NCBI GenBank assembly: GCA_047495785.1
Contig: JBLDXI010000046.1
Location: 1,550,001 to 1,614,000, forward strand
Source of the DNA: Lepidodermella squamata
Lineage: Eukaryota; Animalia; Gastrotricha
Direction of reading: 5' to 3'
Length of the DNA stretch: 64,000 bases
The notes under the pieces: generated by a model
The model's input: only the letters and a program-made list of their open reading frames with translations
What the model was told of the DNA's origin: nothing
Databases searched by the model: none
Translations under genes and position numbers: made by a program
Shown here: one piece after another, positions 22,801 to 64,000 of the stretch
Position numbering within the stretch: the stretch's first letter is position 1
Layout of the letters: each line of letters begins with the position of its first letter

Positions 22801-23143
22801 CCCTGTCTGGTACACGGCTCAACAGGCTATGAAGGGCGACCCTGACTCGCCTGTAACTGTCTACGCAATCGTCCTCGCCTGGCCGACGAACGATGAAAAC
22901 CTGTTGTACCTCACCCGGCTATCCCCAACCGAAACAACGACTGTCACAATGCTCGGATATACCAGCGGTGGTGCGTTGCCGTGGAAAATGATCGGCTTCG
23001 AGCCGGGAATTGCCGTTGATTTCAGCGATATTCGATTCGCAGACATGCCGTCGTATGTCGCCTGGGTGCTACGCATTGACAATCTGTCGCCGAAGCAACA
23101 GCAGATTCATCCGCTTGTTCGAGAAAATTACATCTTCAGCTAA
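19831..23143 (+). CDS. FUCA: Alpha-L-fucosidase (GH29), secreted/lysosomal
   Basis: Six exons (~19831-20022, 20079-20145, 20198-20403, 20463-20593, 21127-21648, 22799-23143). Motifs [47 protein letters not shown] (nucleophile Asp), [19 protein letters not shown]. Confidence 0.95.
21781..22146. mobile_element. MITE with ~45-bp TIRs in fucosidase intron 5
   Basis: GGGTCCCCCACTAAGCAGAAGGCTTC...GTAAAC at the left is the imperfect reverse complement of GTTTATCC...GAAGCCTTCTGCTTTGAGTGGGACCCC at the right; a second partial copy lies at ~51030-51320. Confidence 0.75.
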
Positions 23144-23390: not shown

Positions 23391-26300
23391 ATGTCGGCGC
23401 CGTTTCGCGGGTCTTCGTTCGTTGAAAACGACCGCGAGTTGATACTTGCGGCGAGCGAACTGCCCGGATCTCTGCCCGCGAATTCGTTTCACCTGTCGCC
23501 GAACGAGCCTGGCATTCAGTTCGCAAACACGGACTACGACTTTGTTTCGCTGTCGATTCGCACGAATTCGTCCAATTCCGTGCATAGGAAAAGCCGCACT
23601 GAAAGCCACTCGCCCAGTGCGTCGATATCGAACGGCTCGCCAGAGCGGGAAGTCACCAACTTGGACATGTCAGATCTAGTCGAGTAAGCTTTCTCTCAGT
23701 ACATATTCAAATATTTCTGAATACTTGATTAAAAAATCTTCCTTAAAATACCGCAATGAGTGTAAATTTTGGACGAAAGAAGTGTGTTAAGTTTAAAATT
23801 AGGGTCGATTCCGAACATTTTGATATTTAGGACCTAGATGAGGAACAAGATTTCCGATTGATCTGCAAATTTTGGCGATTTTGACCTGATTTTTCGGCAA
23901 TTCAAGACGTTTTGCATAAAGTTGGACAGTAATTTTCGCAACATTTTCGCACAATAATTTCATCGTAGAGATTGGCCCATAGATCCACAATAAAGATAGG
24001 ATTAACCAATTTGAATTTCCAAGGTGACTTTTTTATTTGGAGCTTGGTTAGCTAATGCATGTCCCATTTTTAAATTTAGCAACTTTTTGCAATAAATTCA
24101 ATCAATTTTTTCAAATTAAAACTACCCAGAGAATCTCACATTTTTATTCCGCGATCGAAGAATATACAAATTTACCGGAGAAAACCCGGAAACCCCCGAT
24201 GGTAACTGGCGAAGTAACATGAAACCCGCGAACTTTTATTTTCTTTTCTCGAACCATTTTAACTTAAAGCATCGGAACCATCGGAATATTCAATTTTTAT
24301 ATTTTAAATAATAAGCATCGGAAAAGTCGCCTTTATATTTATTCTTATTTTCCGATGTGTTAAGACATTATGTTCGATCAAATAAGTAACTTGTTAATTT
24401 CGGAATATCTTAACACCGTCGGAATTACCTCAGGGCGTGACAATGCGAGCTGAACGAGCGTTAGTAGGTCGTGCACCTTGTACCACAATTTGATCCGACT
24501 CTCTGTAAACAAAGGTAAAATTGTCTTACGACCGTCGGAAAGAGGCAAATTACTTACGCCCAAACCATTTCCGCGCGTTGAACTTCACATGAAAATAGCA
24601 CATCAATCGTAGCACTGCTCCCTTGCCAAAGATTGTTTCGATCGCAGTAGTAATATAGCCAGCGCCATCTGCCATTACCGCCATCGGAAGATAAAGGGGC
24701 ATAAACTTTCTCAAACTACGAAAAATGACCTCGTATGCTCTGCCGTTTTCGTTGCTCGCAACTCTGAGTAAAATGGGGTGAAACTTGCGGTTTTTGTCAC
24801 TTGAGCCGCCAGGCTTCTGAGTTCGTGATTCGCACCAGGCACGAAGCTCGGCTGTTCCGAAAGAGCTTGAAAGCGCGTCAGGACCAACAGTTGCCATTCG
24901 ATGTTTTCTCTTCAACTGTTGCTTCAAATTGGCGACTTGCCTCGTTGTCAGCTTTGGATTGTCTTTGATGAGCCGCTCCCTGATGTACTTGGGTGGATCA
25001 TTGATATGATCCAGCACATATCGCCTCACCTCGGCTGTTAACACGCTTGTCGAATTGATTGGATGCACATGAGCGCCGCCACACGAAAACACGGCTTGGT
25101 CAGGAGACCATTTGAGTACACCCCGGTGGGGGCAATCCTTTGAGCCTGACTTCCGATGCTTACAGACGTAATAGCATGTTTGCTTGTTGAAACCGCTCTT
25201 CGTAGTGTCAATCCAGAGAATGCTGTAGTTCCGCTAGACATGGAATGTAATGCCGAATGGCAAAGCTTCGAACAAATCAAACTCAAATTCATCTGTCGGC
25301 TTCGGGTCGGCAATAAAGTCATTTTCATCGTCAACCAGAGCAGGGTCATCTTCATCCCAGTCCTGATCTTGATTCTCGACCGACTGCCCATCGATAGCCT
25401 CGTCGGAGTCCTCAAATTCCTCTACACTTCCGTCAGATTCGTACAATTTCAAAAAGTTCATGTTTCAAATGATGAAAATTGGGAGAATAAATTAATGTTT
25501 AATAAATCGTTCATTGCTGCTTCAATTTAGCGCGAATTCCGACGGTTTAAGGTAGTGTTACGATACATTAGTCGCGTGTTCCGATGAAATAAATCAAAAC
25601 AAGTCATTCCGATGGTTTAATTTACTTTCCTTGCGATTTTTGTATTTCCGACGCTTTAAGTCAAAATGGTACGCGAAAAGAAAATAAAGGTTCGATGATA
25701 TTAGCTGAGTCCTAACTGGCTTGGTAATTTTCGGTATTTTGCCCAGTTTGTTTAAATTTCATCGGATTATTTTGATCCCATTGACGAGTTCCTTACCTGA
25801 TTACTGTTCTCGCGACATTTTGAATTTTTTTATGATTTTTATGGCAGCTGGCAGTGAGATATAGCGTGTCCCATAAGTAACGCAATCAAATAAAATACAC
25901 GGAAGATGGTTCAGAAACTCTGAAATTAGAGACGAAGCAGCATCTCATTGCCCCAAATTTCTTAGAAAAATTCATAAAATCACGAGAATAGTAATCAAGT
26001 ATGTCACTTGCTGATGGGAATAAAAAGTCCGGAGAAATTTGGCCCAACCGGATAAATTACCGAAAATTACCGAACCAGTTGCCATCGGGGTTTTCCGGGA
26101 TTTTTCCGTAAATTTTTTATTTCTTTGGGTAAATCGCGGATGAGAGATAGAATATCCCTAAGTAGGGTTCGTTGAAAAAAATTAGTTCAATTTCCTACAA
26201 AATATTGCTAAATTGAAAAATAGGAGCGCATTTTAGAGTTTTTAAACCCTCTTTCATGCATTTTATGGGACACGCTTTATTAGTGACCGAATTAGCCATT

Positions 26301-29300
26301 TTTGCACCCGAATTTATTCAATTTTTTCAACCAAAATTTATGTAATTTTTTGTTTTAGTAACGAACTGAATTCTCAAGCGTTGGCGTTGTGCAAGCGATA
26401 CGTGCTGAAACACTATTTCCGGCTATTGCAAGTCATCGCCTGGGAGCCGTTCGCCTTCTGCAACTGCTGCTACTCGTGCTCGAACCAGAAGCTGTACGGC
26501 GACGAGACGTCGGCATTCCACCGCTTCTACATCGGCGCCATCAACCTGCTCTACCCGATCCTAGTCGTCGCCTTCCTAGTCTACTCCTACGTATTCGACG
26601 TGATCGGCTGCCAATGGGTGGTCATGATCGCCCCATTTTCACCCATCGGACCAGCTATCATCAACTCATCCGCCCTACCGCCTGAAAATTTAACAACCAC
26701 CCCATTCGGCGTTTTATACAACATGGAAACAACAACCAAGGTAATCCCATTCGGCCCGGTTATTCAAAAGGAAGAATGCAGTTCGCACTGGCTGACGACG
26801 TACGTAGTGCCGAACATCCTCCACTTCGTCGCCTACGTCATGGGCTTCGTCTACTTCCGCCTCATGCGTTCTGAACAGCTGTACGCGTTGATTGAACGCG
26901 TGTTCCTGAACTCAGCCCTCGTGAAAAACCGCACCGTCATGTCGTTGACTCGAGTGATTCGAAAACTGCGCATCATTTTATTGGCCTCTTTCACCTGGGT
27001 CGTTTTAGCCACCGCTCTGTACGTATTTTTTCTAACCGCCTTCCCCGACCATTCTTACACAATCATCCACGACGCGTTGCGCCTCGACGACAACGTGTAC
27101 TATTTTATCCTCGCCCTGCGCTCGATCGGCTACATTCTAGCGAATCTAGTCACGCTGACGGTTGTCTTCAACTTTGTCGTGCAGTGCGAGATGCTGTGCT
27201 TCTACTTCGAGTTCATCTTCCACCGCCTGCGCGAGAAGGTGTGGCTCATGAGCGATGCGTTCAAGCACGTGTTCAACGTGGCGGCGTTGGCTCGCCAGAT
27301 CAACTTGTTCCAGTCGCATCTAACGTCGGTTGTCATGTTCAAGCTGCTGATAACAACGACAATCGGCATTATCACGCTGTTTCAGAACAAACAAGACGAC
27401 CCAGTGGTGAGTTTCCGCTATCAATTTCCTCAACTAGGCTTATCTTATATATCGTGCTTAATCATGAGAAAAAATGGTTTGAGTACCGGATCTGAACATG
27501 TGAGCCTCGAACCTTTTTGGAGGTTCCTGGGGTCGTTGGGATCGCGGCTTCAAATTCCTAATTTGCCTTATTTTTTCACGATTTTAACTTATTTTTAACC
27601 GTAAATTACTGTCAGCCCAGTGGAAAAATATTCGACCAAGTTGAGAAGTATGGTTGAAGTCACCTAGTAAATGAATCTCAAATTCCGAAATACGGAAAAA
27701 ATCTATTAATATAGGACTTTAAAACAATTTTTTCAGGTTTTGAAATTTAAATTTAACTAGAAATTTCGAGTGTTGAAGAAAATGAGAATTGCTGGCTTTG
27801 AGGAATATCTAATATCCGCTGGCGAGTCATCGTTCAGTTTCGGTAACGATGGAAAGCGAAACTCAGTGTTAATTAAATTAAATTGAATTGAAATTGAAAT
27901 TTGAAATTTTTTCGAAAAAACTTGGAAAAAATCATAGAAATTCATGAGATGCGCGTTAATAAGCAAGTCCAGGGCCATACAAAAGCTGAGCTGGGCCAGT
28001 TTTATCTTCCTAATTTAGATTCGGTAAATATGTTCGGTAAATAAAAATATGGAAATGCTCGGTAAAATGAAGTTCGAATTTTAGGAATTTTCTCAGGCTT
28101 GGAATAAAATCGTTTGAGTGGGTGCGAAAAGCATTGATGAAATCCTTGAATCGCTAAAAGAAATGCTACTATCCCTCAGCGACCTTCAGGAAAACTCCTA
28201 ACCGTTCATTTCCGAGGTCGAAACCAATACATATCGTTTAAACTAATTCGGGAAAATATCCACCTTGAAGAAAATTTACAAAAATCGCCGAAAAAGTTAT
28301 GTTAAGTTCCAGAGAAATTATCTCTGGTAAAACTCAATTCCCTGCGGCCTAATTCTGACGTCATGGTAGAGAGTGAACGGCTTCGAAAAAAAATCAGCTG
28401 TAATTTAGGTTCAAGTAAACACGGCCTGATTGCGCACTCGCGGCAGCTGATTATTCTAATTACACTGAATAGCGGATCGTTTTTTAGGCAAATTTTTTCA
28501 CTCAAAAACAACAACGTGTAACAGTCGGACATGTGCACTGAACAGCGCGTAAACAGCATAAAAAAAACTGCCTGGCACCTGGTCAAACTGCGTCATAGTA
28601 AGCGTTGGCATAAAAATACTAGGCTGAAACCATATAAAACAGGCGCATCGTTTTCATAGTTTTCATCGTTTTCCAAAACTTGAATTTTCAATATTATAAA
28701 ATGAATTTACTTCAAATTTCCGTTATTTACTTTGCCGCATTTGCCTCCGGTAATGCATTTGCTGCAGTACCTACGATTGGCGGGTGTCAAATGTTCCCGG
28801 CTGATAATATCTGGAACACCCCGATCGACTCGCTACCCGTCCATCCTAAATCCGCGACCTACATGGCCACCATCCAATCCATGTCAGGCAACAACTACCT
28901 GAAAGCTGACTTCGGCACTGTTTGGAACGGAGCCCCAATCGGCATTCCGTTCAACGTCGTCAACGGGGCTCAGGCGAAGTTATCCCTAAAATTCGACTAC
29001 GCCTCTGAAAGCGACGCAGGGCCGTACCCGATCCCGCAGAATGTGCTGATCGAGGGCGGCACGAACGCTCCGTTGTCCGACGACCGCCACGTGCTGCTAG
29101 TCGACAACTCAACCTGCACGCTGTACGAAATCTACAACTACCGACCCCAGGCGGACGGGTCGCTTCAAGCCGGGTGTGGGGCGATCTGGAAACTGGGCTC
29201 AAACGCACTGCGCCCTGATACTTGGACGTCGGCGGACGCGGCTGGTCTGCCGATTCTACCCGGGCTTGTTCGTTACGAGGAGGTGGTCGCCGGTGAGATT

Positions 29301-31163
29301 GCTCACGCTATTCGATTCACCCTGCCGAAAACGCAGCGAGCCTACGTGTGGCCGGGCCGGCACTACGCGTCGTCGATCACCGACCAGTCTTACCCGCCGA
29401 TGGGGCTGAGATTCCGCCTGAAATCGACCTTTGATATCACGCCGTTTTCGCCGAAAGTGCAAGTTATTCTACGGGCTTTCAAGAAGTACGGCCTGCTGCT
29501 AGCGGATAACGGCTCGAAGTGGTTTGTTTCGGGCGTGCCGAATTCTAACTGGGACGATAACGATTTGCGAAATCTAGCCAAAGTTCTCAGCTCGAATCTC
29601 GAGGTGGTCGATGATTCACTGCTGATGGTGAGTAAGGACTCGGGCCAGGCCAAACAGTCGTCAGCTAGCACGTCGACTTCATCATCCCAAGCAACTGCTT
29701 CTACGACTAAATCAGCGACTTCTACCACTACTACTACGAAATTATCGACTACGATGAAATTGTCCTCCACCACTACCAAGAGGAAATAATTAGCAAAATA
29801 ATTTAGAGTCATAATTTTGTGATGATTACACCTCAGTTATAATCCTGGTGAATTATGTTAATGAACTTGTAATATTATCTAATCTAATAGGTTTTAAAAT
29901 TGTCGAAATTATTTTTTCCGTTCTGTAAATAATTAAGCTGGGCTACGGCTATGTAGAATATTTGATGTGTTTATTGAATAAAAAATGAATTTATATGATT
30001 TTAAACAAGTTTTTGAAGAAATTTTTTCATGTCGTGGGCATGAATTTAGTTGAAATTTCATCTCGTTTTTAACTAATTTTGTAATATTGAAAAGGTATAG
30101 GAACCCTTAATTCACCCTAAATTGGGGGTTTCAGCTCTAAGATGACCCAAAATATGGCTTTTCGGGTTAACCATCTTCCTTAAAATCTCAATTTTTTTGC
30201 GTAATTATTTATTTAAGAGCATTTATCCCACAGTTGAGTTGGTTATAAAAAAAATTGTCAGTGAGAAAAACCGTAACAACAAGTCATGATTATTCGGTCC
30301 TGTTCAGAATTTTGCGTCAGTATATGAGTTGAGCCTCTATCGATTCCCAAAAACAAGTGATTTTTCCGGTATCTAGCCAATTTTTCAGTTATATCATCGA
30401 TAAATAACGTGAAAAGAAGAGAGGAAAGGGGATCGCACCGAGGTTCAGAGAGTTAAATCGGAAACTAAATCGTTTACCATAACAGAGGCTTGACAGTTTG
30501 TGTACATGTTGGCTATCATTTTCAAAAAATATCTTCACCAAAAAACGATGATTCATCAAATCTAATGCGCTGCTGTAAGTGACGAAGGGTTTTCTTAAGA
30601 AATTTGAAAATATTGTTTCAGGTGGATTTTTTACTTTTTTAATTGATTAATTTTCAATTATTCTGCTTGAAAAAATATCATGAATAATTACATCATGTGC
30701 ATGTCTTAAGAAATTTGAAAATATTGTTTCAGGTGGATTTTTTACTTTTTTAATTGATTAATTTTCAATTATTCTGCTTGAAAAAATATCATGAATAATT
30801 AATTTTTGTCATGAATAATTTATGATTTCGCATCTTGTGCAGATATGGGCGTATAAAGGCGCATTTCCCGTCATCTGGTTCATCCCGGTCGTGTACTGCT
30901 TCGCCGAATCGGCGCGCCTGTTCACGTACAACCGCACGCTGATCAACCAGGCGCTCGAGATGCGCGTGTTCGGCTACGCGGCCGCCAGCCCCGCCGAAAT
31001 CGACTCGTTCATCGCGTTTCTGCGCGCCGCCAACGTCCGCACCAAGCTCTTCCACGTCGGCATCCGGCCCTCGTACCTGCTGATCATCGCCTTCCTACTA
31101 GCATTTGCCCTCGTGGCAATGCTGCAGCTGGACATTGTTTCATTTGGCTACCTAAAACTCTGA
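23391..31163 (+). CDS. Multi-pass membrane protein, gustatory-receptor-like / 7TM ion channel (GrlHz-like), ~550 aa
   Basis: Phase-compatible exons 23391-23683, 26359-27406, 30843-31163. No signal peptide, Ser-rich N-terminus, LCKRYVLKHYFRLLQVIAWEPF, ~7 hydrophobic helices, C-terminal EIDSFIAFL...KLFHVGIRPSYL + final TM. Family recalled from sequence pattern, not searched. Confidence 0.65.
24050..26235. repeat. Foldback/MITE-like element with long imperfect inverted arms, interrupted by the MULE insertion
   Basis: 24058-24210 plus 25713-25835 is approximately the reverse complement of ~25960-26232 (CCCCGATGGTAACTGG...GGTAATTTTCGG vs CCGAAAATTACCGAACCAGTTGCCATCGGGG). Related arms at ~22190-22460 and ~20860-20930. 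Confidence 0.65.
24211..25712 (-). mobile_element. Internally deleted Mutator-like (MULE) DNA transposon with frameshifted transposase remnant
   Basis: Minus-strand fragments 25461-24550 with MULE core (VMADGAGYITTAIETIFG...LMCYFHV); ~50-bp subterminal inverted repeats (24229-24277 vs 25648-25694); 8-bp flanking duplication TAACTGGC (24203-24210, 25713-25720). Confidence 0.8.
28633..28639 (+). promoter_or_regulatory. TATA-box-like element upstream of the nested bacterial-type gene
   Basis: TATAAAA ~62 nt upstream of the ATG at 28701; could be chance in AT-rich DNA. Confidence 0.35.
28701..29789 (+). CDS. Intronless secreted protein of a bacterial-type uncharacterised family plus Ser/Thr-rich tail, nested in Grl-like intron 2 (HGT candidate)
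   Basis: 362-aa intact ORF; signal peptide MNLLQISVIYFAAFASGNAFA; motifs FPADNIWNTPIDSLPVHP, SDAGPYPIP, DRHVLLVD...CTLYE, WTSADAAGLPILPGLVRYEEV, HAIRFT, PPMGLRFRLK, YGLLLADNGS, recalled from widespread bacterial hypothetical proteins; AATAAA at 29977-29982. Confidence 0.85.
   Translation: MNLLQISVIYFAAFASGNAFAAVPTIGGCQMFPADNIWNTPIDSLPVHPKSATYMATIQSMSGNNYLKADFGTVWNGAPIGIPFNVVNGAQAKLSLKFDYASESDAGPYPIPQNVLIEGGTNAPLSDDRHVLLVDNSTCTLYEIYNYRPQADGSLQAGCGAIWKLGSNALRPDTWTSADAAGLPILPGLVRYEEVVAGEIAHAIRFTLPKTQRAYVWPGRHYASSITDQSYPPMGLRFRLKSTFDITPFSPKVQVILRAFKKYGLLLADNGSKWFVSGVPNSNWDDNDLRNLAKVLSSNLEVVDDSLLMVSKDSGQAKQSSASTSTSSSQATASTTKSATSTTTTTKLSTTMKLSSTTTKRK
30593..30801. repeat. Near-perfect tandem duplication (~98 bp x2, period 111)
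   Basis: TCTTAAGAAATTTGAAAATATTG...ATCATGAATAATTA at 30593-30690 and 30704-30801. Confidence 0.9.
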
Positions 31164-32857: not shown

Positions 32858-33318
32858 CAAAGAAAACGAGTTCAAGTTGTTCAAGTTCAAGTTCAAGTGT
32901 TTTTTGACTAGTTGGGCAAGCCAGGCGATACTTTACGTGACTCATCGCAGCGTATCTAAAATGCTATAGCTTCGAGTTACGAATACGAAGTCACCACATT
33001 TGAGATCTATGCTCGCTGCTGGCTACGCACGAGCTTTCTTACGGGAGCACGTCCGCGTAGCACCAGCAAGACAAAAGAATTATAAAGACCGCGCACCGCC
33101 TTAATTTTATTCACTTGACCGCGAAAAGCAAGCGATCGCGTTTGTTTGCTCTTGCGCGGTTGCATCGATTGGCGCGTGGCGCGGTTAGAATCGTAAACAC
33201 GCTGACAGATGGTAGTGGTAGATGGTGCTTTATAATGCAGAACACGATGCCGTGCTAATCGGAAACATTTTGGCAACTTGATCGAAAATTATGCCGTGTG
33301 GCCTACTCTGCTGCGACC

Positions 33319-34819
33319 ATGGACAAACCATCGAAGCGTGTCGGAGTGGCGACGTTACCGCGGAGTGTAGCCAAAGTCGCTGCGAAATGGAATGAATCTA
33401 TCGTTAATAACTACCTGCTAAAATTCACCGAAATGCCGCCTATTACTTCAACAACGAAAGCGTCTCCTTTCACCCGCGTCGCTTTGGTTGACGAGAGCCT
33501 TATACCAAGCTTCGTGATCAATAACTCGTCAATAAGCCAAGGACTCAAGGCTAAGGTTCGCTTTCAGGGCAATAGGAAGCTAGATCTTATCGAAGATGTA
33601 CAATTAGATTAGAGCTAAACATTATTTTGGTAGAACTTTTCTTTTTATCGTATAAATTTGCAGAACATTTCGGCTGAGTTACAGGTAATGAAATGCAGAT
33701 GTAGATACGGTTGGGATTTGCTCCCTACCCTGTAGAATAGCCAAGCTTCAACGGTCTAGCATAGACGGCTGATTTTGAGTTGATATTTTACATAATATTA
33801 GCTTCAACCCCCTTAACATTTGTGCTCATTCATTTATGCAGCCTTTTGATGATGATCACCTCCACGATCACGGCTGGCATTCATATCTTCTCGGATTTGC
33901 AATGCTCTTTTTCCTTTGGTGAGCAATCGTACATTAGTCATGCGACTTTTATTAGCCTTTTTCTGATAGTCTGTCTGTTACTGTTGGGATCCTATGGAAG
34001 TGTATGGACATGATCTTCGTCCGCGAGTCGAAGCGATACGATGACGCTTATGACGACTTGATATTCGGAAGCCGACAATACGGCTATTACGACGACGATG
34101 ACACGTCAGACAATGATTCGCTCGCAGATGTTACGATGCAGCACGTCGTTGCGCAGCCGCCACCTAAACGCAAAAAGTTGGATGCGAAAAAGATCAGGAT
34201 GCCACCACGCAATGACCGGCTGCCATTCACGGATGAACAGAACCCGATCATGGGCTTCACCAATCCTGCGTTCTACGGATCGTCGGATGGCGGAATGGCG
34301 AGCCCATCCACTGTCAAAACATCGAACCCTGTTAAGCCGAAACTGAAAACTGGATCAGAGCCTTACCTTGCATTTCAGCTGCAGCCAGAGTGGTATTCCC
34401 CGCCTACAAAAAAGTCGTCGATGCGGACTTCTGGGGATTCCAAGACCCGCAATGCCCAACATGGGTCGTCCGTTCCGGCCTCCCCTACGCATGAAGTTTC
34501 ATTCAGTGACACTCGGCGCCACAGTGGGTATCAGACTGAACCCTGCCCGACCCCGAAGTCATCTCCCCAGAGCCAGCATCAGCGGCATTGGCGAGTCATG
34601 GCACCCGATGAAGCTGCGTATGAGACAGATATCGATACTGGGGCACGGCATCGATTGCTGAAGGTCGAACCGGCTCAACCGCCGCACTACTCAAGCCTAG
34701 ATGCCATCGTCTTGAGGCAGTATCATCGGCAGCAGCAGTATCGACAGTCAAGAGAAAACGTCACCTTTTCGCCGATCTTTAACAGAAAACGGCACCCATC
34801 AGACTCGTCTGATTACTGA
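33319..34819 (+). CDS. Orphan single-pass membrane protein with disordered cytoplasmic tail; 5' exons uncertain
   Basis: Exon 33842-33918 splices in phase to 33970-34819, giving ...HGWHSYLLGFAMLFFLCLSVTVGILWKCMDMIFVRE... (one TM) followed by a ~270-aa Ser/Pro/Asp-rich tail; AATAAA at ~34837. Upstream ORF 33319-33612 and micro-exons probably belong to it. Confidence 0.55.
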
Positions 34820-35303: not shown

Positions 35304-38300
35304 ATGTGTGAAATACACTTCTTACTGCTATTCGGGGCCATTTTAATGGCAGCCAATATCTCTGAAGTTGGAGCATGTGAGTCCTAATACATGCCCATCA
35401 GAATGGCCTAATTGAGAGTAATTTCAGTCACCTGCAGCCCGGCGTGCGTTAACGGCAGTTGTACAAACACCAATGTATGCACTTGCAATATTGGCTGGAT
35501 GGGCAGCTTTTGCGGCGTCCAAGCGCCAGCAAGTTTGTTCAATTTCTCGTCAAGTTTTCCATCTTGAAAATAACCTATCTCTATCAGTTTGTCAGAACAG
35601 CTACAACTGCGCAAATGGAGGAACTTGTGTGAACGGCTTGTGTTATTGCCCCGCGAACTTGTCTGGCGTGACATGTGTTGACACCGGTAAGGAGACCTAA
35701 CATTTAGGACCATGAGTTAATTGCAATTTTTAAGACACCTTCTTTTGCTCGGTGAGTGGGGTGGATTATCCGTGGTGTTACAATGGTGGAACTTGCACCA
35801 ATAACGGAACTGTAAGTCGATGCAACTGCCCTCCAGGCATAACTGGAAAATATTGCGAAACGGGTAAATTAAAAATCTGAAAAATCTGGTGAACAATCTA
35901 TTACAACAATTTTCAAAGTTCTTTGTGCCACGCCGTGTCAATTTGGAGGGACGTGTTCAGCGCCAAACACTTGCACGTGTGCGCCAGGTTACTGGGGCAC
36001 TGACTGTTCGAGTTTCAATTGCAGCCAACCCTGCATGAATGGCGGGACATGCGTCGCGTCGAACACATGCGCCTGTGACGAGGATTGGAGTGGCGCGAAC
36101 TGTAACACATGTAAGGCGCATTAATTACCCGTCGAATGAATTCCGCATTCCAGCTTTTTTGCTAAGCTACGACTTGCCAGAATATGGAGCTGCTCGGTAA
36201 GATTGTTGGTTGGGGTGGTAGCTTTTCATCATCATCGCAGGCTTCGACGCCAAGTGGGCCACTATACAGCGATGGCAACCTCGCGATAGGAAATTACTGG
36301 ATGGCAGGCCCGACAGATTCACTTCCTTACATTGAATTCAATTTTGGCTCTGAAATGTCTGTGTCTAAAATCATGGTCGCTGGAGGTGACACTGGGGGTT
36401 TCTTGAGGGAGTACTACGTCAGTTTTGCTGTAAAGACTAGTCTGGTTTCACCCAACTCCTGGTTGTACTATCCGGTTCTGGTGAATCAATCTGTTTTCTC
36501 GACGACGTTGAAATTTTTCACAGGAGCTCCAAATTCGAGCTCGACTTTCTATCCTTCCGGTGCAACAACATTTTGTCCAGTAATCCGCACAGATAGGCTG
36601 AGGGTTCATTACAGGAATGGCAGCATGGGCCCTGCGGATTTGCGAGCGAGATTCTTGGTTTACGGCTGCCCGGCGCATTCGGGCTGTGTCCAATGTTCGG
36701 CTGCTAACACCTGTCTCTGCCCTCTTGGCTACAAAAGTAGCACGTCGTCTTCACCTGACCTGAGACCGGCTTGCGGTAAATTTTCCAATTTAGATTGTAG
36801 GTCTAAGTTTTAGTGGAATTTTACAGATGTCTGGAGCATGCCGCCTATCGACTGTGAGGACATCGCGATGCAGCAGCCCCGAAGTCCCAGTGGAGTTTAC
36901 ACCGTTTATCCATTCGGCTACTCAGCTGTTCAAGTCTATTGTGATATGACAACGCTCGGCGGTGGGATGACGGTTATTCAAAGGCGCCTTGGCAACGATG
37001 TCACTTTCTACCAGAATTGGACGTCTTACGCTAACGGTTTCGGCTCATTTACCGGCAGCTTTTGGTTAGGCCTGCAACAAATCGCTTATCTAACGTATCT
37101 GGTCTACAACGCGAATTATTTATATTTCTTCGCTACGACGTATGACGACGACTACGGCTACACGGCGTACAACCGAGCATTTAGGGTCAATACTGGTAAC
37201 AACTACTCAGTTTCTGTTGGGGCGAAATCCGCCGCTGGCAACATGGGCGACTCCTTTACTCCAGCTGGCGCCAAGTTCACTACGATTGATCGAGACAACG
37301 ATGCCAACGCTACTGGCAATTGTGCCCAACTAACAAACGGAGGTTGGTGGTATAGTGGTGTTTGTGTTCCGACGATAAACGGGTCAGTTGAAGTCAAAAT
37401 TAGCAGCATTTTTTCAATATTTACCTTGATGTAGCTTGTATGGCTCGAATATTCCACCAACCCAAGGAGTAAACTGGCGAGCATGGAAGGGCGATTCTGA
37501 GTTTCTGAAAACAACTGCAATGACGATACGAAGAGGGCAGCTAGCATTAGTCACACCAGGTTTGTTTCGAGAGTTATTTTGCCCTCCTCAATCTTTGTTT
37601 TGGCGCAGCTGTTGCCAGCTTTGACTCATGGCCAGCTCACGAATGCTCGGATTTAGTTATTCTCAATCCGAATGCGACAAGTGGATTATACACAATTTAC
37701 CCATCTGGCATTCCTGTACAAACCTATTGCGAAATGGGCGCCTTGGGTGGTGGCTGGACTGTGATCCAGCGCAATTACAACGACGGGGTGACAAGTTTCA
37801 ACCAGAACTGGACCACTTACGGAAACAGATTCGGGTCGCCACTGAAAGCTTTCTACCTTGGAAATTCCAACATTAACAAACTGACTGGAGCGGGTGTCCA
37901 GTTTCAACTGGCCATCGTCATCGAAGACGTCTATGGCGTTCAAAGGACATCGCGATATCAGAGCTTTGCTATTGGCACCTCGTCTTCTAATTATACCCTT
38001 TCAGTCTCTGGTTTCAATTGGTTGAATTTCGTTGAACATGCTGGCGACTCTCTTACACCCCACAACTTGATGCCGTTTCAAACGGGTGACTACTACAAGA
38101 CTGGGTGCGCACCGATTAGAAATGGTGGTTGGTGGTTTCGACCATTAAATGAATCGTCGTGTCTCGAGTCAAACCTCAATGGCCAGGCACTGAACAACTC
38201 GTATGAGCAAGGCATTGTTTGGGCGAGTTGGAAAGGCCGTCAAAACTCGGTTAAATCTGTTACGATGATGGTAAAGTCTTTGACAAAAAAACCAACTTCT

Positions 38301-41300
38301 TGCACCGACATTGGCTTGGCTAATAACACGCTTCCCGACGGTCTTTACTGGATCTTTCCATATGGCCTGAAGCCTTTGCAGGTCTACTGCTTCATTTCTG
38401 CGCTGGCCGGTGTTTCAGCTGGGAACCGTGGCTGGACTGTGATTCAGAGACGAAGCGTTGGCTCTACTTTCAGCTTCAACAAAAATTGGACGAGCTATAA
38501 AACAGGCTTCGCTTCTGCGAATCCTTTGGCAGCTAATTCGGATTATTGGCTAGGCCTCGAAAACATCTACCGAATGACTGACGGGGCGGCATTCAACTTA
38601 TACGTTCAAGTTTCACAGTTATCACCCCCTCACTTATACCTCTACAATGCCGTCTACTTGGACTTCAAAGTGATGGACGAAGCTCGAGGATACGCGCTCT
38701 ACGCAGATAGGTATCAGACGAATTCTGCCGGAGATTCGTTAAGCATGTACCACAATGGGCAACCTTTTTCAACCTACGATTACGGCATAGCTTCAGCCTG
38801 CATAAATTCCTCTGGATTCCAGGGCGGTTGGTGGCTACCATCGAATTGCAGCTACATGTCGCATTTGAATAACGATATAACCTCCAATGTAGCGCCGAAG
38901 TATATGGCTTGGACATCAACTAGCACGGGAAACATCTCATTTGCCGGGTCGATCATGATGATTTTCCAAGATCGTAAGTTTTACCCTTCCTACCGCTAGC
39001 TAAAACTTCCCACTATCTGGTTTAGGAGCTAATCTGCCGAACTTGCCATGTGCAACCAAAACGGCGGTCGGAAGTGGGGGAGCTTGCCGCTACACAGCTA
39101 AGCCAGGATGTAAGTTGGTGTCGGGCGAGGAGGTGCGACTTCCACCTTCCGCAACCAACTTTTACTACCCTCGATCCTCAGCAGCAGATCCGATTTACAC
39201 ACGTAATTGCAACTTGTTTCAATCTATGTAATCTATGTTGAATTGTGTAGCCTTCAATGCTTCAATGGATTGTGGGGCCGTGCAGCAGCAAAAGAGCCTT
39301 TACTATAGATTCATTTCCGGGGTGAATTCATCGATTCAAGTCGGAGATTTTGGACCTGGTACGGTCTGGTGCGATCAGGAAACCATGGGTAAGACGGATT
39401 TGCATCAACTTGCTTGCATCTCATGATGTTCTATCAAAGGTGGTGGTTGGATTGTTGTACAGCGTCGGGTCGACAACACCCAGACGTTCTTGCAAGATTC
39501 AACAGGCTATTTAAGTTCATTTGGATCTTTGTCAGGAAATTACTGGATGGGCCTCGATGCTATTCGCTTGATTACAACAGGAGATAACTTGGAGCTACTG
39601 GTCGAGCTTGTTGGACCTAATGGATACGCTTTTGCGATTTACGATACGTTCTACCTGTCATCCCCAGTCAATAAGCTGGTGGTCGGCGGTTATCGTACGT
39701 GTTCAACAGCGGGGGACTCGCTGTCACCACTGAACAACTTAAAGTTCATCGTTGATGACTGTGGCACTGGTGGTTGGTGGCTTCCCATGCCGTGCAATAC
39801 ATCTGTTTTGTCCTCGAACTTGAACGCTCCTTATTCAAAAGTAGGGTTGACAGGAACCTATTGGAAGACTTACTCGGCTTCAACGGTCAATTTTCTACGG
39901 ACTGAGATGAAAGTCCGCCGCAAAGACTTGCTCAATGGCCGGTACGTAGTCGCGAAGAATTACTTCTGTAATGCGACCGGGAGTACAATTGCTACCATGA
40001 ATAGCGTAATTTCCGCGCAAGACTGCTTGGATCTGTGCACGAGGTATTCAACATTTGAATGCCAAATAGCAATCTATGATCGAACATCCACTTGTATCTT
40101 GAGTTCGAAGTCATGTGCAGTTGGACAGGGAATGGTGAATAATGCGTACGATAGCTATTTCCGTATGGATAGATGTACCCATTTCTCGGCGTGTGGCCCT
40201 CCACCTGGCATGACCGGCACCAGCCTTGAACTCATAAACATGCCGGGAAGTTTGACTGTGTCCTACACTTGTTTACCGGGATACACTAATGCAGCATCCC
40301 CGAATGACGCGACTACGCTTACATGCAACGCGACTTCGAGATACTGGCTTGGAACTTGGATGCGCTGCCAGACACTTTGCGGAATTTACCCTGATTTTAG
40401 CGACGCCCCGGCTACGCGACTACCCATTGTTAACTCAACTGGCAATACCACATCCATTTTTTACGAGTGCAATGCGAATTACGAATTAGTTTCTGGCAGT
40501 TTGACACAAGTTTGCGCGCCTCCTTATGGCGCCTGGGTGGGCAGTCCTCCTGTTTGCGGTTCGACACGATGCAGCCAGCCGCCGGTGGTCTTAGGTACTA
40601 CTAGCAATTTTACTCTAGTTCCGGTCGATCAAAGGAATACTCGCTACTCCGTCTGGCAGTATAAATGCTCAGCTGGATATGTGTTCAACTTAACTAATAC
40701 AAACACTGCTTTTCTCACCTGTGACGTAACCAAGCAATGGGTGGGAAATGTCAGCGTTTGCGTTCCAGACTGCTCACAGATTGGGAATTGCCTGAACGGA
40801 GGCTCATGCGTTGCTACCAATCAATGCACCTGCGCGACAGGATGGTTTGGAACAAATTGCAAGACAGGTATATTCATATAAGTGCCCTAAATTCATCACC
40901 TATCCATCCTTTTCGATAGCTAACTGCTCATCTGTTGGAGGGTGTTCTAATGGTGGTACTTGCGTGGCGCCGAACCAATGCGTGTGTACTTTAGGATGGC
41001 TTGGAAACAACTGCACTATTCGTGAGCATTCTACTCAACTTTTCGGTTTTATAGTGCTTCAATTCTCTGATTTAGCCGATTGCTCCTCGAAGGCCAACTG
41101 TACGGGACACGGAACCTGCTCAGCCCCGGCAACATGCCTTTGCAGCTCTGGTTGGAAAGGCGCGAACTGCTCTGAACGTCAGTAATTAATTCTTAGGACT
41201 CGTGGTATTTTAACCCGTTGGTTTAATAGCTGATTGTTCGATCATCGATGGAGGATGTCAAAACAATGCGACATGTGTTGCTGGACCCAAGTGCATTTGT

Positions 41301-44300
41301 AAGCTAGGTTGGGCTGGGGCTAACTGCACTACGCGTAAGTTCGGCATTCTGGTAAAACTGGTTCATAACGTATCCGTACCTGTCTATTAGCCGACTGCTC
41401 AACGTTATCCAACTGCTCTGGCCATGGATCTTGCGTCGGCCCCTTGAATTGCAGTTGCGCTACGGGCTGGCTCGGCGAAAGCTGTGCAGCAGGTTAGATG
41501 ATACCTTCAAACCTTGACTCCGCATTACACCCTTTACCCATAAAGCGGATTGTTCCAACTTGGGAGGCTGTAAGAACAGCGGCGTTTGCTCGGCTCCAGG
41601 TTTATGCCTTTGTAACGTGGGTTTCTCTGGCAGCGATTGCAGTTCCGCAAACGCCAGTAATGATAACCCAGCGGCAGCCTTAACAGCCCTGTCTAGTTTG
41701 CCGAGCACGACCTTGGTGGTTAAGGCGGAAGCTTTCAGCTCGATTGCACTCGAGAGTTCTACATTCATAGCGAAAATCGAAGATTCAGCGAAAGTTGCTT
41801 CGAACTCGGTAAAAATTCGAAATTGCTATGCATGGTTGACATGTCTATAGGAAACCCGTTTATTAGGAGTCCTTCTTTGCCAGCTTAGGTCCGCTGTTGA
41901 CTCGTTATGCTGAAATATCGGCAACGATACCTGCCGCCGCTATTCCTGGAATAGCAACTAGTTATGCCGAAGCTGCAAGCTCAGTCATGACTGCCGTCGT
42001 TGAGAATACGGTGCTGCCGACAGCCGAGACTCCAGAATTGAACCTAGACGACCGATCTGCAAAGTGTTTGGTCGAAAAATTCGACTCTGAGGTCAAGATT
42101 GTTGAAAAGAGGGTCGAAATGACTACTGAGCGAACGGAAACGATTTACGGGAATTTCAAGCAAATGATTGAAGGAATGGTAACGATGGTGAAAAGCGCAT
42201 TGTCCAGTGGGAAAGACTTTTCGTTCAATGGGAAGTTCTTTTCAGTCCTTGTCTATAGTTTCCCGGTCGGCAGTGTTTCAGGCATGCAACTGAATACTAG
42301 CTTGGCCATCGCTCAGTTTCAAAATGCTGAAAATCCCTTGGAAATGTTTGAAACGATTCCAGCTGGCATGAACCGTGACTCGGTGCTCACAGCTGCAGTT
42401 CAAGCGTACATCACTAACATTTTGGATGTCAGTCAGCCCTTCAACATGCCCACGGTGTCCATTAAAATCTACTATGGCAAGACGTTGCTGATGTTGAATA
42501 AGCGGTATCCCATGAAAATATCAGCCAGACCGTTGGTCAACAAAGTCGCGCAGCTGAGTATGCAAAAGGTTGATGCGCAATGCGACGTGAACAAGATCAA
42601 ATGCGACCCGAGTAGTAACGCGGATTCCATCGGAACTTTGGTCAGTTTCCCTGTTACCCCTCGAGCAGGAGACTTTTTCCTCATCTATCCAGCAATCGCT
42701 TTCAACTACACGAGTTATATCTCCCTCAATTCTACGCCGACTGTGAAATCCTACATTTGGTCAGTTGATGTTGTTGGCGAATCTGTAACCATCAGTTCTC
42801 ACAAGAGATACCGCAGTCTAAAATTCAGTTTCGATCCTAAAACAGAACTACGCATCAGTGTCCCTGGAGACACTTTAGCTGATTTTGCTGCAGCGCAAGG
42901 CTATTCGTCATCAGAAAACGTCTCCTTCTCGATGTTTGTATACAGCAAGAAAAATCTTTCCGCTTTCAACACTATGGATGACCTGCCTCCCGCGATCTGT
43001 GATATGCTGCGATGTTACGGTTACCATCTGCGAGTTGGATTCGCTTCAAAAGATGAATCTGTGAATACGAGGAAAAAGCGATCAGCCGTCTATTCAAATA
43101 ATGGAACATCGGATGACTTTGAGATAGATGCAAGTTCAACTGAGTCTCAAGTTACCTTCAAATCGTCGTATTTCGGAGACTTCGGAGCAGACGTAAAGTT
43201 TTTCATTTTTGAACGATCTCTCCTACGTATCTCTTTTCTCTAGCTGCTTATATCCCCGAATACCATTCAATTCTCAGATGTGTTCGGGAATTTTTCTTCT
43301 CTGATTGCCGACAATGCTTTTGTCCTTGGATTCATGGTGGCCTCAGTAGTTGCCTACCTCGCAGCCGTGGGTGCTATGGTTTACCTAGATAGAGCTGATC
43401 TGAAAGAGTGGGCGTACCTGCCTCTACTCTGCAACAGATGGCATCAGAAGAACACGTACCTCATATCGGTTGACTACCTACAAGTCAAACGCTTCGATCT
43501 TGAGCCGTTAATTTACATCCGATTCTACGGGGACGTTTGCGACACTGATTGGAAACTATTAAAGGATGGTGTTAGAAAGGTTAGTATTTAAGAAATCGAT
43601 TTTGCAAAATATAGGGAAATCATTCTTTAGAATTTTGATGGAAAACACCCGGGAAATTTCATAATGACGACGTTTCTTCCACTCGGCTACGTGAATGCGG
43701 TTGAGGTGAAAGTTTACAGCCGATATCGAGCTGCTGTAACTCAGAAGCCGCTGCAACTACACATCGATAAGATCGTACTCCTAGATGTAGCAAAGGGGAA
43801 CAAATTCATGTTTCCAGTTCGAGAGACCTTGAAAACGGGCGGCAAGAAGTTATGCTACCTAGCCACCGAAGATCAAGCGAAAGGATTTCGATACCTGGTT
43901 AGTGGTCATTCTAGAACTGGTATCACAGACCAACACCCGTGGCTCTCAATTATCAAGCGACCAATGCCAAGCAATTGGACCCGATGCGAGCGATTGTCTT
44001 GCGTTGTTGCTGCAGTTTTCATGGGCATGTTGGTTAATGCCATGTTTTATGGGAAGGAGTCGACTGCTCCTCGTGTTGGCATTAAAATCGGTAACTTGTT
44101 CAGGCTGTCATGGTTCACGGTATATACTAGCTTCATCGGCTGCCTCGTCGTTATTCCGCCAACAGCAGTTATCGGCTTCATATTCAAGAGAGTTAAGCGG
44201 AAGTCTGCGGAGAAATCAAATTGGCTAACTGTATTCAACGCTCAAGTCAAGGAGGTCGATGAGTACGACGAGAAGGATCCAGGAAAAAAGAAAAAGAAAC

Positions 44301-46993
44301 CGCTGCAACTACCGTTCTGGTGCGTTGGAATCGCTTGGTTCTGTAAGCCGCATTTTCTATAATTAAACCTAACTTAGTTAACCCCATTTTGAACTTGATA
44401 GTGGTGGCGTCATGTATCGGAGTCTCGGCTTTCCTTATTGTGACATATAGTCTGGTTTGGGGTCGTGAAAAATCTTTGCAGTGGTTATCAGGGATGGTCA
44501 TGCACATTGTTCAAGATATAATTATCATTCAAACAGTCAAAGTCCTTCTTTTATCGGTCGTAACGTCTTCCTTGCTCAAGCTTCCAGACGATGGGGTTAC
44601 CATTGGAAAGCTTGTTTACTCAAAAGGTTACTTGAGAATTTCTTTCATGATCTAGTACGTTTTCATTTAAATTTAGAAAATACTGATGAGCGAACCAAAG
44701 TTTTCAAACGCCTGCGTAACATCGTGGTGGGGACATTCCATCACGTCATCTACGTCATCGTGTTTGCCCTGGTTGTAGCATGCACTCAAAATATGTTTTC
44801 TTACAGCTTGGTGAGAGATCTCAAGCCTCTAGTCACAATCTCGGGTGTCCAGCAAGTCCTACAGCCAATTGATGATCACGGAGCTATTTTGGACTGGATC
44901 AGCGATTCTTTGATACCAAACTTCATGAATGGAAACCAGTTGACGTACGGCGGGATTTTTAATCGGAAAAACATCTACGCTGTCCCAAATCACGATGTTG
45001 TTATGATTGGTCCTATTAGACTAAGGCAGCAAAGAGTCAGTCTTATGACTTGCCCTTTGAAAATGGCTGCTATACCTGCTTATACATCACGATATATTTC
45101 GAAATTGGCTGGACAAAATGTTACCTGCCAGGAAGCTTATGTCGATAATCTTGGTTTTGGGTCGCTATCTGAAAATCGAAATTTTTCCTATGATTGGATC
45201 CCGTTACCACCCTACTACCCAAAGATATCCAATGTCTCCACCGACAAAGCTCCATGGCTATACCGAGACGACAGTGGCTTCGTATACAGTGGATGGCTGG
45301 GAAATTACAAAACAGGAGGTTATTACGTCGATCTTCCTCTGAAAATGTGGCAGGCCCAAGATGCTGTGCGGCGTCTGAAAGCCGGCCGATGGTTGGATAA
45401 CGCAACGTCAGTGCTTTTCATTGACTTTGTGCTGTACAATGCCCAAGTAAACCTCTTCATGGCTATCAAAACAGTTTTCGAAGCTCTGCCTGCTGGCGGA
45501 ATGACCTACCACGCCAGGCTGTACCCGCTACAACTGTATCAATACTCGGGGGCAAGTTCATTGTTCATATTCGCTGTTCAGGGTGTTTGGATTCTGTTGC
45601 TCATATCCCATGCCATAAGATTTATCCATGAAATGAGGAAAGTTGGCCCATCAAAGTTTCTGAAAGACGGTTGGGACATTTTGGAGGTTGTGTCACTCTT
45701 GATAGCTTTTTCAATTGTTGGCCTCTTCGCCGCTAGAATCTACAACATCATTAAGACCGTGACTAAAATGCAGACAAATCGAAGTTCTTTCACCAACTTG
45801 GACCTTCTGATCAACTGGGAAGAGTTGATGGCTAACTTGTACGGCATTGCTTTTTTCATCACATTGCTGCTGTTTTTCCGAAATCTGAAATTCAACAAGC
45901 ATTGGTGCGTGTTTTTGGGCACGCTATCGAAAGGCCGGAACGATCTCATTTCCTTCGTATTCGTATTTGTCATTGTTACTGTCATGTTCTCGCTTCTTGG
46001 CTATCTTACCATGGGAACAACTAGGGACGAATTCCGAACTTTCACTGCGTCGGTCATGACCCTGGTTCAGAACATAATTGGAGTATCGGGGTCGTTGATT
46101 TCTCTCGGATTCTCTTCGAGATTCGTTATGTTCTACTGCATGGCCTATTCTACAATTGTCATGTTTTTCGCTGTTCAAATTTTTATGACGATTGTTTCTG
46201 TAACGTATGGGCAAGTCGCAGATAATGTCACTAAATTCACGGATTGGGACAAAGAAGTCGACGAATACATGTCGGAAGAACTGAAAAAGCTCGCAGCTCG
46301 TAAAGGCGGCGTTGATAAGTCTAAAAGTGTTTTCAAGCCAGTCGGAGTTAGAAACTTTGCAAAACGTAAGTTAAACTACCTCAACATTCCTATACTAGTC
46401 TGATAACAATTTATTTTGCAGTCGAGCGATCCGTGCATAGATTGTTGAACTATGTCGATGCAACGTTGTCCGATGACACTCTGGACGCCGAAGACAAACG
46501 ATATCGATGCTTAATGCATTGGATAGATTTCAAAATCCACAGCGAGTTGAGGCGGATTTCCAAACCAGTTGTCATCCCGACTCCTAGTGTGGGTAACCTC
46601 TCGTTTCCTCAGAAGCATCCACAATCAGACTGGAGGTCTCTTCTTGGTGACAAAGTGGTGTCTCAGAGAGGCCATGTTGTCCAAACGATCCAGCCGCCAC
46701 CGTTGCCTCCTCCACCGCCTGTTTACGTCTACACTCCCATGAGGATTGAAACACATTTTCTATTACGCCAAGAGACGAATTTCGTACCTGCAATCAATAA
46801 GCCTGCTGTGAAAGCACCTAAGCCTCATTCGATACAGCCTGCAAAATCCAAGAAAACCTCCCTGCTCGATTACTTGAAGCCATCAAAGAAGAAACCTAGC
46901 ATTCAAGCAAGCGGGAGCAATTTGCCGACGGACGCAGTTCGCAAAATGTACGATAAAAAAACTGAAAATCGATTATACGCCACAAGCATGTGA
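35304..46993 (+). CDS. Polycystin-1-like (PKD1L/REJ-family) receptor-channel with EGF, F5/8C, 4x fibrinogen-C, PAN, CCP/sushi, EGF array, degenerate GAIN/GPS, TM1, PLAT and polycystin channel domains (~3,400 aa)
   Basis: Signal-peptide exon 35304-35376; EGF exons; discoidin-like 36184-36670; FBG domains at ~36838, 37640, 38290, 39260 (VYCD/E..GGGWTVIQRR, FWLGL, GGWW); PAN ~39950; three CCP; EGF array; in-phase splice 41809->41868 into the stalk; PNTIQF-TM1; PLAT; HPWLS..RP..SNWTRCERLSC; IRLRQQRV; RWLDNATSVLFIDFVLYNAQVNLF; C-terminal LERSVHRLLNYVD. Confidence 0.85.
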
Positions 46994-51799: not shown

Positions 51800-62429
<10,630 letters not shown>

Positions 62430-62463: not shown

Positions 62464-64000
62464 CAGGGTACTTCATACAGTGATAATTTCATACAAAACC
62501 AGTAGTAACTCGTACATTATTTCCGTGATATTTTCATGACATTTTTCTGATTTTTTCGTGACTTTCTCATACGAAAAAAAATACCAACGAAAATCGTGAT
62601 AATTTCATACTTTATTCTTCTACCAACGAAAATCGTGATAGTTTCTTACTTTATTCTTCTACCAACGAAAATCGTGATAATTTCATACTTTATTTTCTCT
62701 ACAACCCGAAAACAGATTTAACCGTTAATCATCATCTTTATCACCATTATTATCATCTTCACTTTCACCCTCAGGATCAACAAAGTCCAAAGGGGCCAGT
62801 TCGCGAAAGTCTTCTTTCGCCTTTGGCTTCTTCTCCTTGAGTTGAGAAAGCGCATCGGAAAGCGCATCCAAGAACTCAATTGGAGTAAGCTTGTTCTGAT
62901 CGAACTCGTCCCAGCGCAGTTTGATCAAGTTCGATATTTTTGCATAAAGCTTGATTCCGGAGCTAGCCGGCTTGTAGGTGTTTGCGGTGATTTGGTCGAT
63001 AACAACTCGAGAATCGTTTTCTAGCTCGAGCATAGAATTCGGAAAGCGCCAGACATTAGGGTGACTCACTCCAACCTTCGTGTTAATCTTGTTGTTGTTG
63101 CCTTCTGCAAAGTTGTTAGTGCGAAATTCCTTTCGATAAACACAAAATCTCTCCTCGGTTACAACTTTAAACCAATACGAATCGATGTACTCGAAAAATT
63201 TCTTCAAATTTTCGGATTGGTCGATAAGGGGTTGGGCGCCAAACCAGATTAAATCAAAAGCGGGTCTCGTGTGATCCATAGGCAGCAGATGAATGGCCAT
63301 TATACGGCGAACGATGCGATGAATTTCGCCTTCCACCAGAAGATAATCGGTCCATAGACCGTTCTCATGCACCCATTTCAAAACGGCTTGGCAGTAATGA
63401 AAATGACACCCTGCTATGTCGCAGAGGAAAACCAGAGCCAAGGCATTCATCATGCCAAGTTCATAGTCGCAAGTTGTTAGCGGTTGCGTGATTGATGGAA
63501 CTAGATTGAGCATCTCGCCTGAGCTAAGCTGATCGAACCATTTGGCGACGGTTTTCGGCTTCTTCGGTTGACAGCGATCGAAGTGCTGGTAAAGCGTCCG
63601 CTTGCAATTCTCGTAGCAAGGAATAGCAGTGACTAGTTTCGACCGTTCTAAACCATGATCTTCGCCAAAGTCCAACATCTTCCCGACCTTGTCGTTGTAT
63701 ACATCGTGAACAGACTTGCCTTTTTCTGTTCTGATCGCCGATTTTATCCAGTACATAACGACATAGCTCAGGCCGGCGTAGTAGTTCGGAACATCATCGT
63801 GACGACCTTCAACTCCGACGACTTCCGTCCCATCAGCATTCAAGACCAAACCAGCTTTCGAACAACGCATGCAGCGGAAACCACATCGATCATCGATCCA
63901 GTTGTAGAGGTGACCCTTGCTGAACCATACCTTGTTGCCGCGAGTACTGCCTATGAAGTAATTGGGAATCTCTTCAGGCTTTTTCTTCGCCGGAGCGGCT
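62464..64000 (-). mobile_element. MULE transposon (FLYWCH-like N-terminus + MULE transposase), probably internally deleted; extends beyond the window
   Basis: Frame open from the window edge to the stop at 62725: GHLYNW...FRCMRC...H, TCDYELGMMNAL...GCHFHYCQAV, FFEYIDSYW, RTNNFAEGNNNKIN...HPNVWRF. Confidence 0.85.
62582..62712. repeat. 39-bp tandem repeat (~3.3 copies), subterminal to the MULE
   Basis: TACCAACGAAAATCGTGATAATTTCATACTTTATTCTTC starting at 62582, 62621 and 62660. Confidence 0.9.

Follow-up and report, generated by a model that had tools for sequence, protein, structure and literature searches.

Receptor-channels of the polycystin-1 type share a common plan. Vertebrate polycystin-1 (PC1), PKD1L1-3 and PKDREJ as well as the sea-urchin SpREJ have 11 transmembrane (TM) helices, a PLAT domain after TM1, a TOP domain and a channel region (PMC1934368). 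On the outside they carry a GPS motif and heads with LRR, WSC, CTL, SUEL and PKD modules but not FBG (fibrinogen-related) domains, while the REJ module is present in all of them except PKD1L3 and is hence not obligatory for the PKD1 family (PMC1934368). A functional tie between such a protein and a fibrinogen-like one has been described in Ciona, where the PKD1-like sperm receptor-channel s-Themis (s-Themis-B) reads the fibrinogen-like egg-coat protein v-Themis, whose coding sequence lies inside s-Themis's own first intron (PMC7018956). Fibrinogen-related domains (FBGs) also occur in the tenascins and in ficolins, tachylectin-5 and FIBCD1, as oligomerised single domains. In the gastrotrich Lepidodermella squamata, a stretch of 64,000 nucleotides (the window; contig JBLDXI010000046.1, positions 1,550,001 to 1,614,000) contains a gene in which both module types meet in one chain: four tandem FBGs precede the membrane part of a PKD1-like protein. 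The gene occupies 35304..46993 (ATG at 35304, TGA at 46993) on the forward (+) strand, and all its features given below are on that strand.

At the DNA level, three-frame translation and a listing of splice sites yield 23 exons in one reading frame of 10,530 nucleotides (3,509 amino acids), of which the sole stop codon is the terminal one. Exons 1-8 are located at 35304-35376, 35428-35532, 35588-35686, 35735-35863, 35919-36110, 36167-36775, 36827-37382 and 37435-37559; exons 9-16 at 37609-38973, 39026-39202, 39251-39388, 39440-40867, 40920-41021, 41076-41177, 41230-41334 and 41391-41492; and exons 17-23 at 41546-41808, 41867-43192, 43244-43579, 43631-44342, 44402-44626, 44677-46365 and 46422-46993. 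All 22 introns are GT-AG and measure 48-59 nucleotides. Twenty of them contain an in-frame stop and must therefore be spliced, one more shifts the frame, and a single intron (41022-41075) is open. Phase 1 prevails in 15 of the first 16 introns, the pattern expected of shuffled extracellular modules. The original prediction of one gene model from signal peptide to channel, made from the bare DNA, is thus borne out at this level.

Alternatively, the model could have mistakenly fused two operon-like neighbours, one gene for a secreted FBG protein and another for a PKD1-like channel. FBG4 is indeed separated from the main stalk exon by five introns that part EGF exons and by a further one behind exon 17. 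However, each of these gaps is a short GT-AG intron like all the others. AATAAA is absent from the gene itself and is found behind the upstream gene and at 47060/47080, and no Met with a hydrophobic leader, and hence no second signal peptide, follows the acceptors of introns 12-17 (from FBG4 to the stalk). FBG4, the PAN-like domain, three sushi repeats and one EGF repeat all lie within exon 12 (39440-40867), and exon 17 (41546-41808) holds both the last EGF repeat and the start of the stalk; this EGF-to-stalk junction had already been placed in a single exon, with the limits 41560-41809. A relative on a metagenome contig (L003) also has a long EGF run directly before its stalk, across an assembly gap. 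The two-gene structure is therefore considered highly improbable. Further downstream, homologues run without introns across the exon junctions 18-19, 19-20 and 21-22 and are precisely colinear with them. As the contigs of the close relatives are colinear with exons 18-22 and have few or no introns, they independently confirm those junctions.

The alleles found in the sole public run that contains this DNA (X1) support the reading frame as well. Among the 40 best-supported differences, 24 codons are silent versus 10 with a replacement, and no stop codon is created; a 6-base deletion in an exon is in-frame, while two 2-base insertions both lie in intron 18. The alleles show that the gene is under purifying selection. 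A candidate joint at 41708-42384 in the same run has the ends GA..GG and a side of 30 bases; it is no splice junction and was set aside. No paralogue of the gene was found inside the window by tblastn with the joined translation, which was also used for the frame check, hydropathy, motifs and the FBG profile; database searches were done exon by exon. One contig in run X1 matches only 44507-44540 and then diverges, which suggests a paralogue.

By its TM plan, PLAT, TOP and channel the protein is a member of the PKD1 family, although, like its Lingula relatives, it lacks GPS and REJ. Hydropathy reveals, besides the signal peptide, 12 hydrophobic stretches, one of which lies in the TOP domain and was discounted, leaving 11 TM helices. 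TM1 (43313..43390) is followed by a divergent PLAT/LH2 domain in exons 19-20 (43445..43858). This domain was missed by Pfam and recovered with a custom profile of distant PKD1-like proteins, which detects close homologues at E 6e-17 (P0002) to 9e-11 and exon 19 at E 2e-4. The part of exon 20 after PLAT matches human polycystin-1 (E 9e-11), and TM2-TM6 (43991..44789) contain the PKD1-family motif HPWLS..RP..S.WTR.ERL.C. The TOP domain follows at 44862..45533 (Pfam Polycystin_dom, E 9e-28) and the remaining channel helices at 45540..46208 (Pfam PKD_channel, E 5e-23); exon 22 matches PKD2L1, PKD2, PKD1L3 and PC1. The chain ends in a basic cytoplasmic tail of about 240 amino acids (46209..46990) with a PPPLPPPPP motif and no domain match.

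In an alignment with PKD2L1, the PKD2-type filter ILG-D corresponds to IIG-V in the window protein, so that the aspartate has been replaced. The pore loop is also variable among the close relatives; the TOP domain and the channel helices, for their part, show good conservation throughout the family. Because of the replaced aspartate and the variable loop, a PKD2 partner is probably needed; both features fit a PKD1-type subunit that completes a PKD2-based heteromer. For the PC1/PC2 heteromer, a stoichiometry of 1:3 is reported (PMC12183636). The idea that a receptor is coupled directly to a channel is weakened by the loss of the filter aspartate, by the variable pore loop and by a conserved furin site that would separate the head.

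An exhaustive search with exon 20 returned six proteins that are close (33-68% identity) and stem for the most part from metagenome contigs; PKD1-like proteins with names, from Lingula, Ptychodera and scallops, come next. An unrooted channel-domain tree was built from 47 rows, with channel-less proteins and nearly identical members of clusters left out. Here, the window gene and its close relatives group at 100/100, and a 15-row group at 99/98 unites them with nine Lingula-type proteins and Haliotis P0116, apart from the proteins with an HL↓T GPS (the arrow marks the cut). On this tree the window gene is shown to belong to a spiralian clade of PKD1-like proteins, the checked members of which have neither REJ nor the HL↓T GPS. 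The Lingula anatina 'PKD1-like 2' expansion (XP_013397161.1, XP_013397107.1, XP_013386761.2, XP_013393442.1, XP_013384713.2, XP_013384714.1) falls in this clade together with P0116. Like the window protein, its members have a degenerate GPS ('FKSNFFGSF'), no Pfam REJ or GPS match and variable heads, which in the Lingula clade are Kringle, C-type lectin, MAM/FN3/CUB or CUB. Unlike the window protein, they have a canonical PLAT domain, and RRLL (or RVKR) where the latter has RKKR. Similar REJ/GPS-less proteins also exist in Lineus, Haliotis and Ylistrum; those of Lineus and Ylistrum (outside the tree) have heads of EGF or Ig modules and give no Pfam match to REJ or GPS. Over all four genera the heads consist of Kringle, C-type lectin, MAM/FN3/CUB, vWD/NIDO, EGF or Ig modules, never FBG. 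A Death-domain match was noted in some GPS-less members of the clade (C-terminal in P0052 of Lingula; also in P0116) and is absent from the window protein.

The marine metagenome relatives L001-L005 (ENA ERZ27333047, ERZ27332993, ERZ23486764; 33-57% identity) cover stalk, PLAT and channel. They resemble the window protein in their dead GPS and furin site, yet have fewer introns. Their membrane-proximal heads also differ: upstream of the stalk, L001 and L004 contain sushi, Thr-rich and LamG-like parts (LamG by eye). The contigs stop before any FBG could appear.

With a profile of the four FBGs that recovers each left-out FBG at E <1e-23, no FBG was detected among the 212 PKD1-like proteins collected, of which 73 have at least 2,000 amino acids and some are redundant or partial; they are a sample and not a census. 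PF00147 is likewise absent from the 49 long proteins related to a Lingula member, two metagenome scans gave nothing useful, and no description of an FBG-polycystin fusion was found in the literature. Within this sample and the literature searched, the original view of the architecture as one not yet described is supported. The FBG head is therefore a further exchange in a group whose heads are exchanged readily. Since head swapping is normal in the Lingula clade, the architecture by itself is moderately surprising, less so than had been implied.

The stalk (41644..43282) appears to be a GAIN-like domain without REJ: no exon has a Pfam match to REJ, and there is no room for one between the last EGF repeat and the stalk. 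The homologue P0002 matches a profile of GPS-intact PKD1-like GAIN stalks at E 3e-7, with the GPS strand of the profile aligning to 'FTSNYMGDIG', whereas exon 18 of the window itself is not significant. A low-confidence AlphaFold model of exon 18 has among its top matches the GAIN domains of CELSR1, BAI3, latrophilin, CD97, GPR126, GPR97, GPR56 and GPR110; these matches are weak (Z at most 6.0), and the recurrence of GAIN structures is only a hint. An Atlas search with the stalk gave a single weak GPS-containing cluster (0.87).

At 43154..43192, the GPS strand reads FKSSYF-GDFG (FKSNFF-GSF in the Lingula members) in place of the canonical CxCxHL↓TSF. With the catalytic His and the nucleophile gone and no cysteine left, autoproteolysis would be very unlikely by established GAIN chemistry. 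About 30-40 residues upstream lies a furin-type site, RKKR↓S (RKKR at amino acids 2292-2295; 43070..43081), both arginines of which are invariant in five close-family sequences. A furin motif located 15-70 amino acids upstream of the post-GPS motif occurs in 5/5 close-family sequences, versus 0/25 GPS-intact proteins. Near the same position, four Lingula members have RRLL and one has RVKR; RRLL is a site-1-protease-type motif. From this distribution we infer that cleavage by a proprotein convertase at RKKR takes the place of autoproteolysis. The stub between this site and TM1 (amino acids 2296-2355) contains no cysteine, so that the head would be either non-covalently attached or shed.

The head itself begins with a signal peptide (amino acids 1-24, by hydropathy; 35304..35376) and five EGF repeats in exons 2-5 (35430..36109; Pfam and pattern count). 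A divergent discoidin/F5-8 type C-like domain (36175..36669; Pfam E 4e-5, under the cut-off) is followed by an atypical EGF-like unit (up to 36774). The first three FBGs come next: FBG1 in exons 7-8 (36844..37537; Fibrinogen_C E 1e-32 for exon 7), FBG2 (37638..38282; exon 9 holds two Fibrinogen_C stretches, E 6e-71) and FBG3 (38295..38969; Pfam E 1e-26). Exon 10 encodes a degenerate spacer (39040..39201) that is sushi-like by eye and has no Pfam match. It separates FBG3 from FBG4 in exons 11-12 (39262..39924; Fibrinogen_C E 8e-19 for the exon 12 part). A PAN/apple-like domain follows (39940..40176; cysteine pattern and a weak match to MANEC, which is PAN-type, E 0.009). Three sushi/CCP repeats (40192..40767) and six membrane-proximal EGF repeats from the end of exon 12 to exon 17 (40768..41643; Pfam and pattern) complete the head, bringing the EGF repeats to 11 by pattern. 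The FBGs are merely 29-39% identical in pairs, therefore the tandem is old. The ectodomain has 47 N-glycosylation sequons, and a single-sequence structure prediction of the FBG4-PAN-sushi part reached a pLDDT (predicted local distance difference test) of 32. Most of the domain list first read from the sequence is confirmed, namely the four FBGs, the EGF and sushi repeats, the divergent PLAT and the channel, while discoidin and PAN remain weak. Of the three to four CCP repeats proposed, two are recognised by Pfam (E 2e-3 and 2e-5) and a third by its cysteine pattern.

EGF together with FBG is the tenascin combination, and a tenascin FBG is the top structural-database match of FBG2. The protein could accordingly be mainly a precursor, tethered to the membrane, from which furin frees a tenascin-like secreted protein of matrix, cuticle or adhesive, with the channel playing a minor part. 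The furin site without a disulfide anchor and the divergent PLAT and pore loop would agree with this. On the other hand, all 11 TM helices are kept and, as noted above, the family conserves the TOP domain and channel helices well, which makes such a precursor very doubtful.

With ficolins, tachylectin-5, FIBCD1 and tenascins the window protein has the FBG sequence family in common, FBG1 matching ficolin-2 and FIBCD1 at E ~1e-30. It differs in that its four FBGs stand in tandem in one chain on a channel subunit. In the FIBCD1 structure, calcium is bound at Asp393 and Asp395, and the acetyl pocket is formed by Tyr405, His415, Tyr431, Ala432 and Trp443; this pocket is common to tachylectin-5A and the ficolins, with Trp or Tyr at position 443 (PMC3908420). 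When the four FBGs are aligned, FBG1 alone keeps the D-x-D-x-D calcium loop (DRDND). The loop is shortened in FBG2, degenerate in FBG3 and almost lost in FBG4, where the ligand-binding loop of the P-subdomain is largely deleted too. In place of His415 a V, L, S or N is found, the equivalents of Ala432 and of the aromatic residue 443 are replaced in 4/4 FBGs, and the aromatic residue 431 is retained in FBG2 only. Since pocket residues are replaced in all four FBGs, N-acetyl binding of the ficolin type is unlikely. The assignment of the head to ficolin/tachylectin-type glycan modules is weakened accordingly.

These residues also bear on a pattern-recognition receptor-channel, in which the FBGs and discoidin would bind microbial or food glycans and gate the TRPP channel directly. 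The resemblance of FBG1 to ficolin-2 and FIBCD1, its intact calcium loop and the presence of a discoidin-like domain speak for such a function. Lectin-type modules are shared with the vertebrate polycystin-1 group and SpREJ, where C-type lectin and SUEL domains occur (PMC1934368). Given the lost acetyl pocket, three damaged calcium loops, the tenascin-like FBG2 and a filter without the PKD2-type aspartate, it is nevertheless unlikely.

In a further proposal, the FBG heads, shed or displayed, would be recognised on a different cell by members of the family, making the protein a gamete or self/non-self recognition receptor. The Ciona pathway joins exactly these module types, PKD1-like and fibrinogen-like (PMC7018956), and REJ proteins of sea urchins function in sperm (PMC1934368). 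Cleavage at the furin site could free an FBG-rich ligand. In run X1 the allele divergence is uneven: 17 differences and the 6-base deletion fall in 276 nucleotides of the third sushi repeat (40494-40775), versus zero differences in 764 nucleotides across PLAT and TM helices (43487-44250). These polymorphism counts are without a genome-wide baseline, however, and the mostly silent variants give no sign of diversifying selection. Furthermore, the Themis proteins contain REJ and GPS, neither of which is present here. In Ciona the fibrinogen-like protein acts as ligand and has a gene of its own, antisense within intron 1, whereas intron 1 of the window gene measures 51 nucleotides and its FBGs are in-frame exons. 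Further marks of the Ciona self-sterility system are a hypervariable head with many alleles and expression in sperm. A role of this kind is judged quite unlikely. A long shot would be a lineage-specific receptor-channel family that unites the modules of Ciona's receptor and ligand, with a convertase in place of GPS, and in which the sheddable FBG head and the Ca2+-channel receptor constitute a self-reading code for cell recognition or allorecognition.

The best reading, with roughly an even chance of being correct, is a convertase-processed, PKD2-partnered sensor of contact or ligand in the REJ/GPS-less spiralian PKD1 clade. Starting from the single frame, the domain order, the clade placement, the dead GPS, the conserved furin motif and the loss of the acetyl pocket, its action may be pictured in four steps. 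The protein would enter the secretory path and become heavily N-glycosylated. A proprotein convertase would then cut at RKKR↓S (amino acid 2295) in place of GPS autoproteolysis, after which the head may be held non-covalently via the GAIN strands, or shed. In the third step, the membrane part would assemble with PKD2-type subunits as in vertebrate PC1 and PKD1L3, probably on sensory cilia. Planarian pkd1L genes are active together with pkd2 genes in ciliated sensory neurons, and chemo- or mechanosensation requires them (PMC11448475). Finally, the FBG/discoidin/PAN head, extended on EGF and sushi spacers, would bind a surface or matrix ligand, and binding or pulling may displace the head and open the complex to Ca2+.

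Several points weigh against this convertase-processed sensor. Run X1 shows no intron skipping and is therefore genomic, so that the gene is known at the DNA level. The stalk model is of low confidence (pLDDT 53 for exon 18; Z at most 6.4). Some Lingula members (P0033/P0163) have neither a GPS nor a furin-type site, and the correlation between furin site and GPS loss rests on one or two evolutionary events. As to the ligand, a protein or unusual glycan is more likely than simple N-acetyl sugars, an argument from lost residues alone.

Fibrinogen-related domains hereby join the list of heads carried by PKD1-type receptors. GPS cleavage is central to current models of polycystin-1 activation, and in this spiralian branch the self-cleavage is lost, with a convertase site nearby. 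The branch thus offers a natural test of whether polycystin-1 gating depends on the stalk being cut at all and not on GPS autoproteolysis as such. Few natural ligands of polycystin-1 proteins are known, and compact, expressible FBG heads make this a tractable family in which to seek them.

Further genes were noted in the remainder of the window. On the forward strand, a class C G-protein-coupled receptor-like gene (9952-12758; ANF_receptor E 7e-13, GABA-B-like by eye) is followed by what is by eye a divergent Cys-loop ligand-gated channel subunit (13196-14559), the main exon of which has no Pfam match. A kinase-domain gene (16583-19611; Pkinase E 4e-9, RPS6KC1-like by eye) and an alpha-L-fucosidase with 65-69% identity to enzymes of many animal phyla (20163-23140) come next. 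An intronless open reading frame at 28638-29786 (+) encodes a secreted protein of bacterial appearance. The minus strand contains TRIM-like RING/B-box/coiled-coil exons, recognised by eye (1-6430), a MULE-type transposase remnant with a weak Pfam match (24553-25421) and a stretch that resembles such a remnant by eye and has no Pfam match (62728-63999). The upstream neighbour of the FBG-polycystin gene (33259-34819, +) has no Pfam match, and its AATAAA lies near 34837, less than 500 nucleotides before the polycystin ATG. Downstream, 51800-62429 (+) encodes a very large CUB-rich protein (CUB E 3e-25) with EGF pieces.

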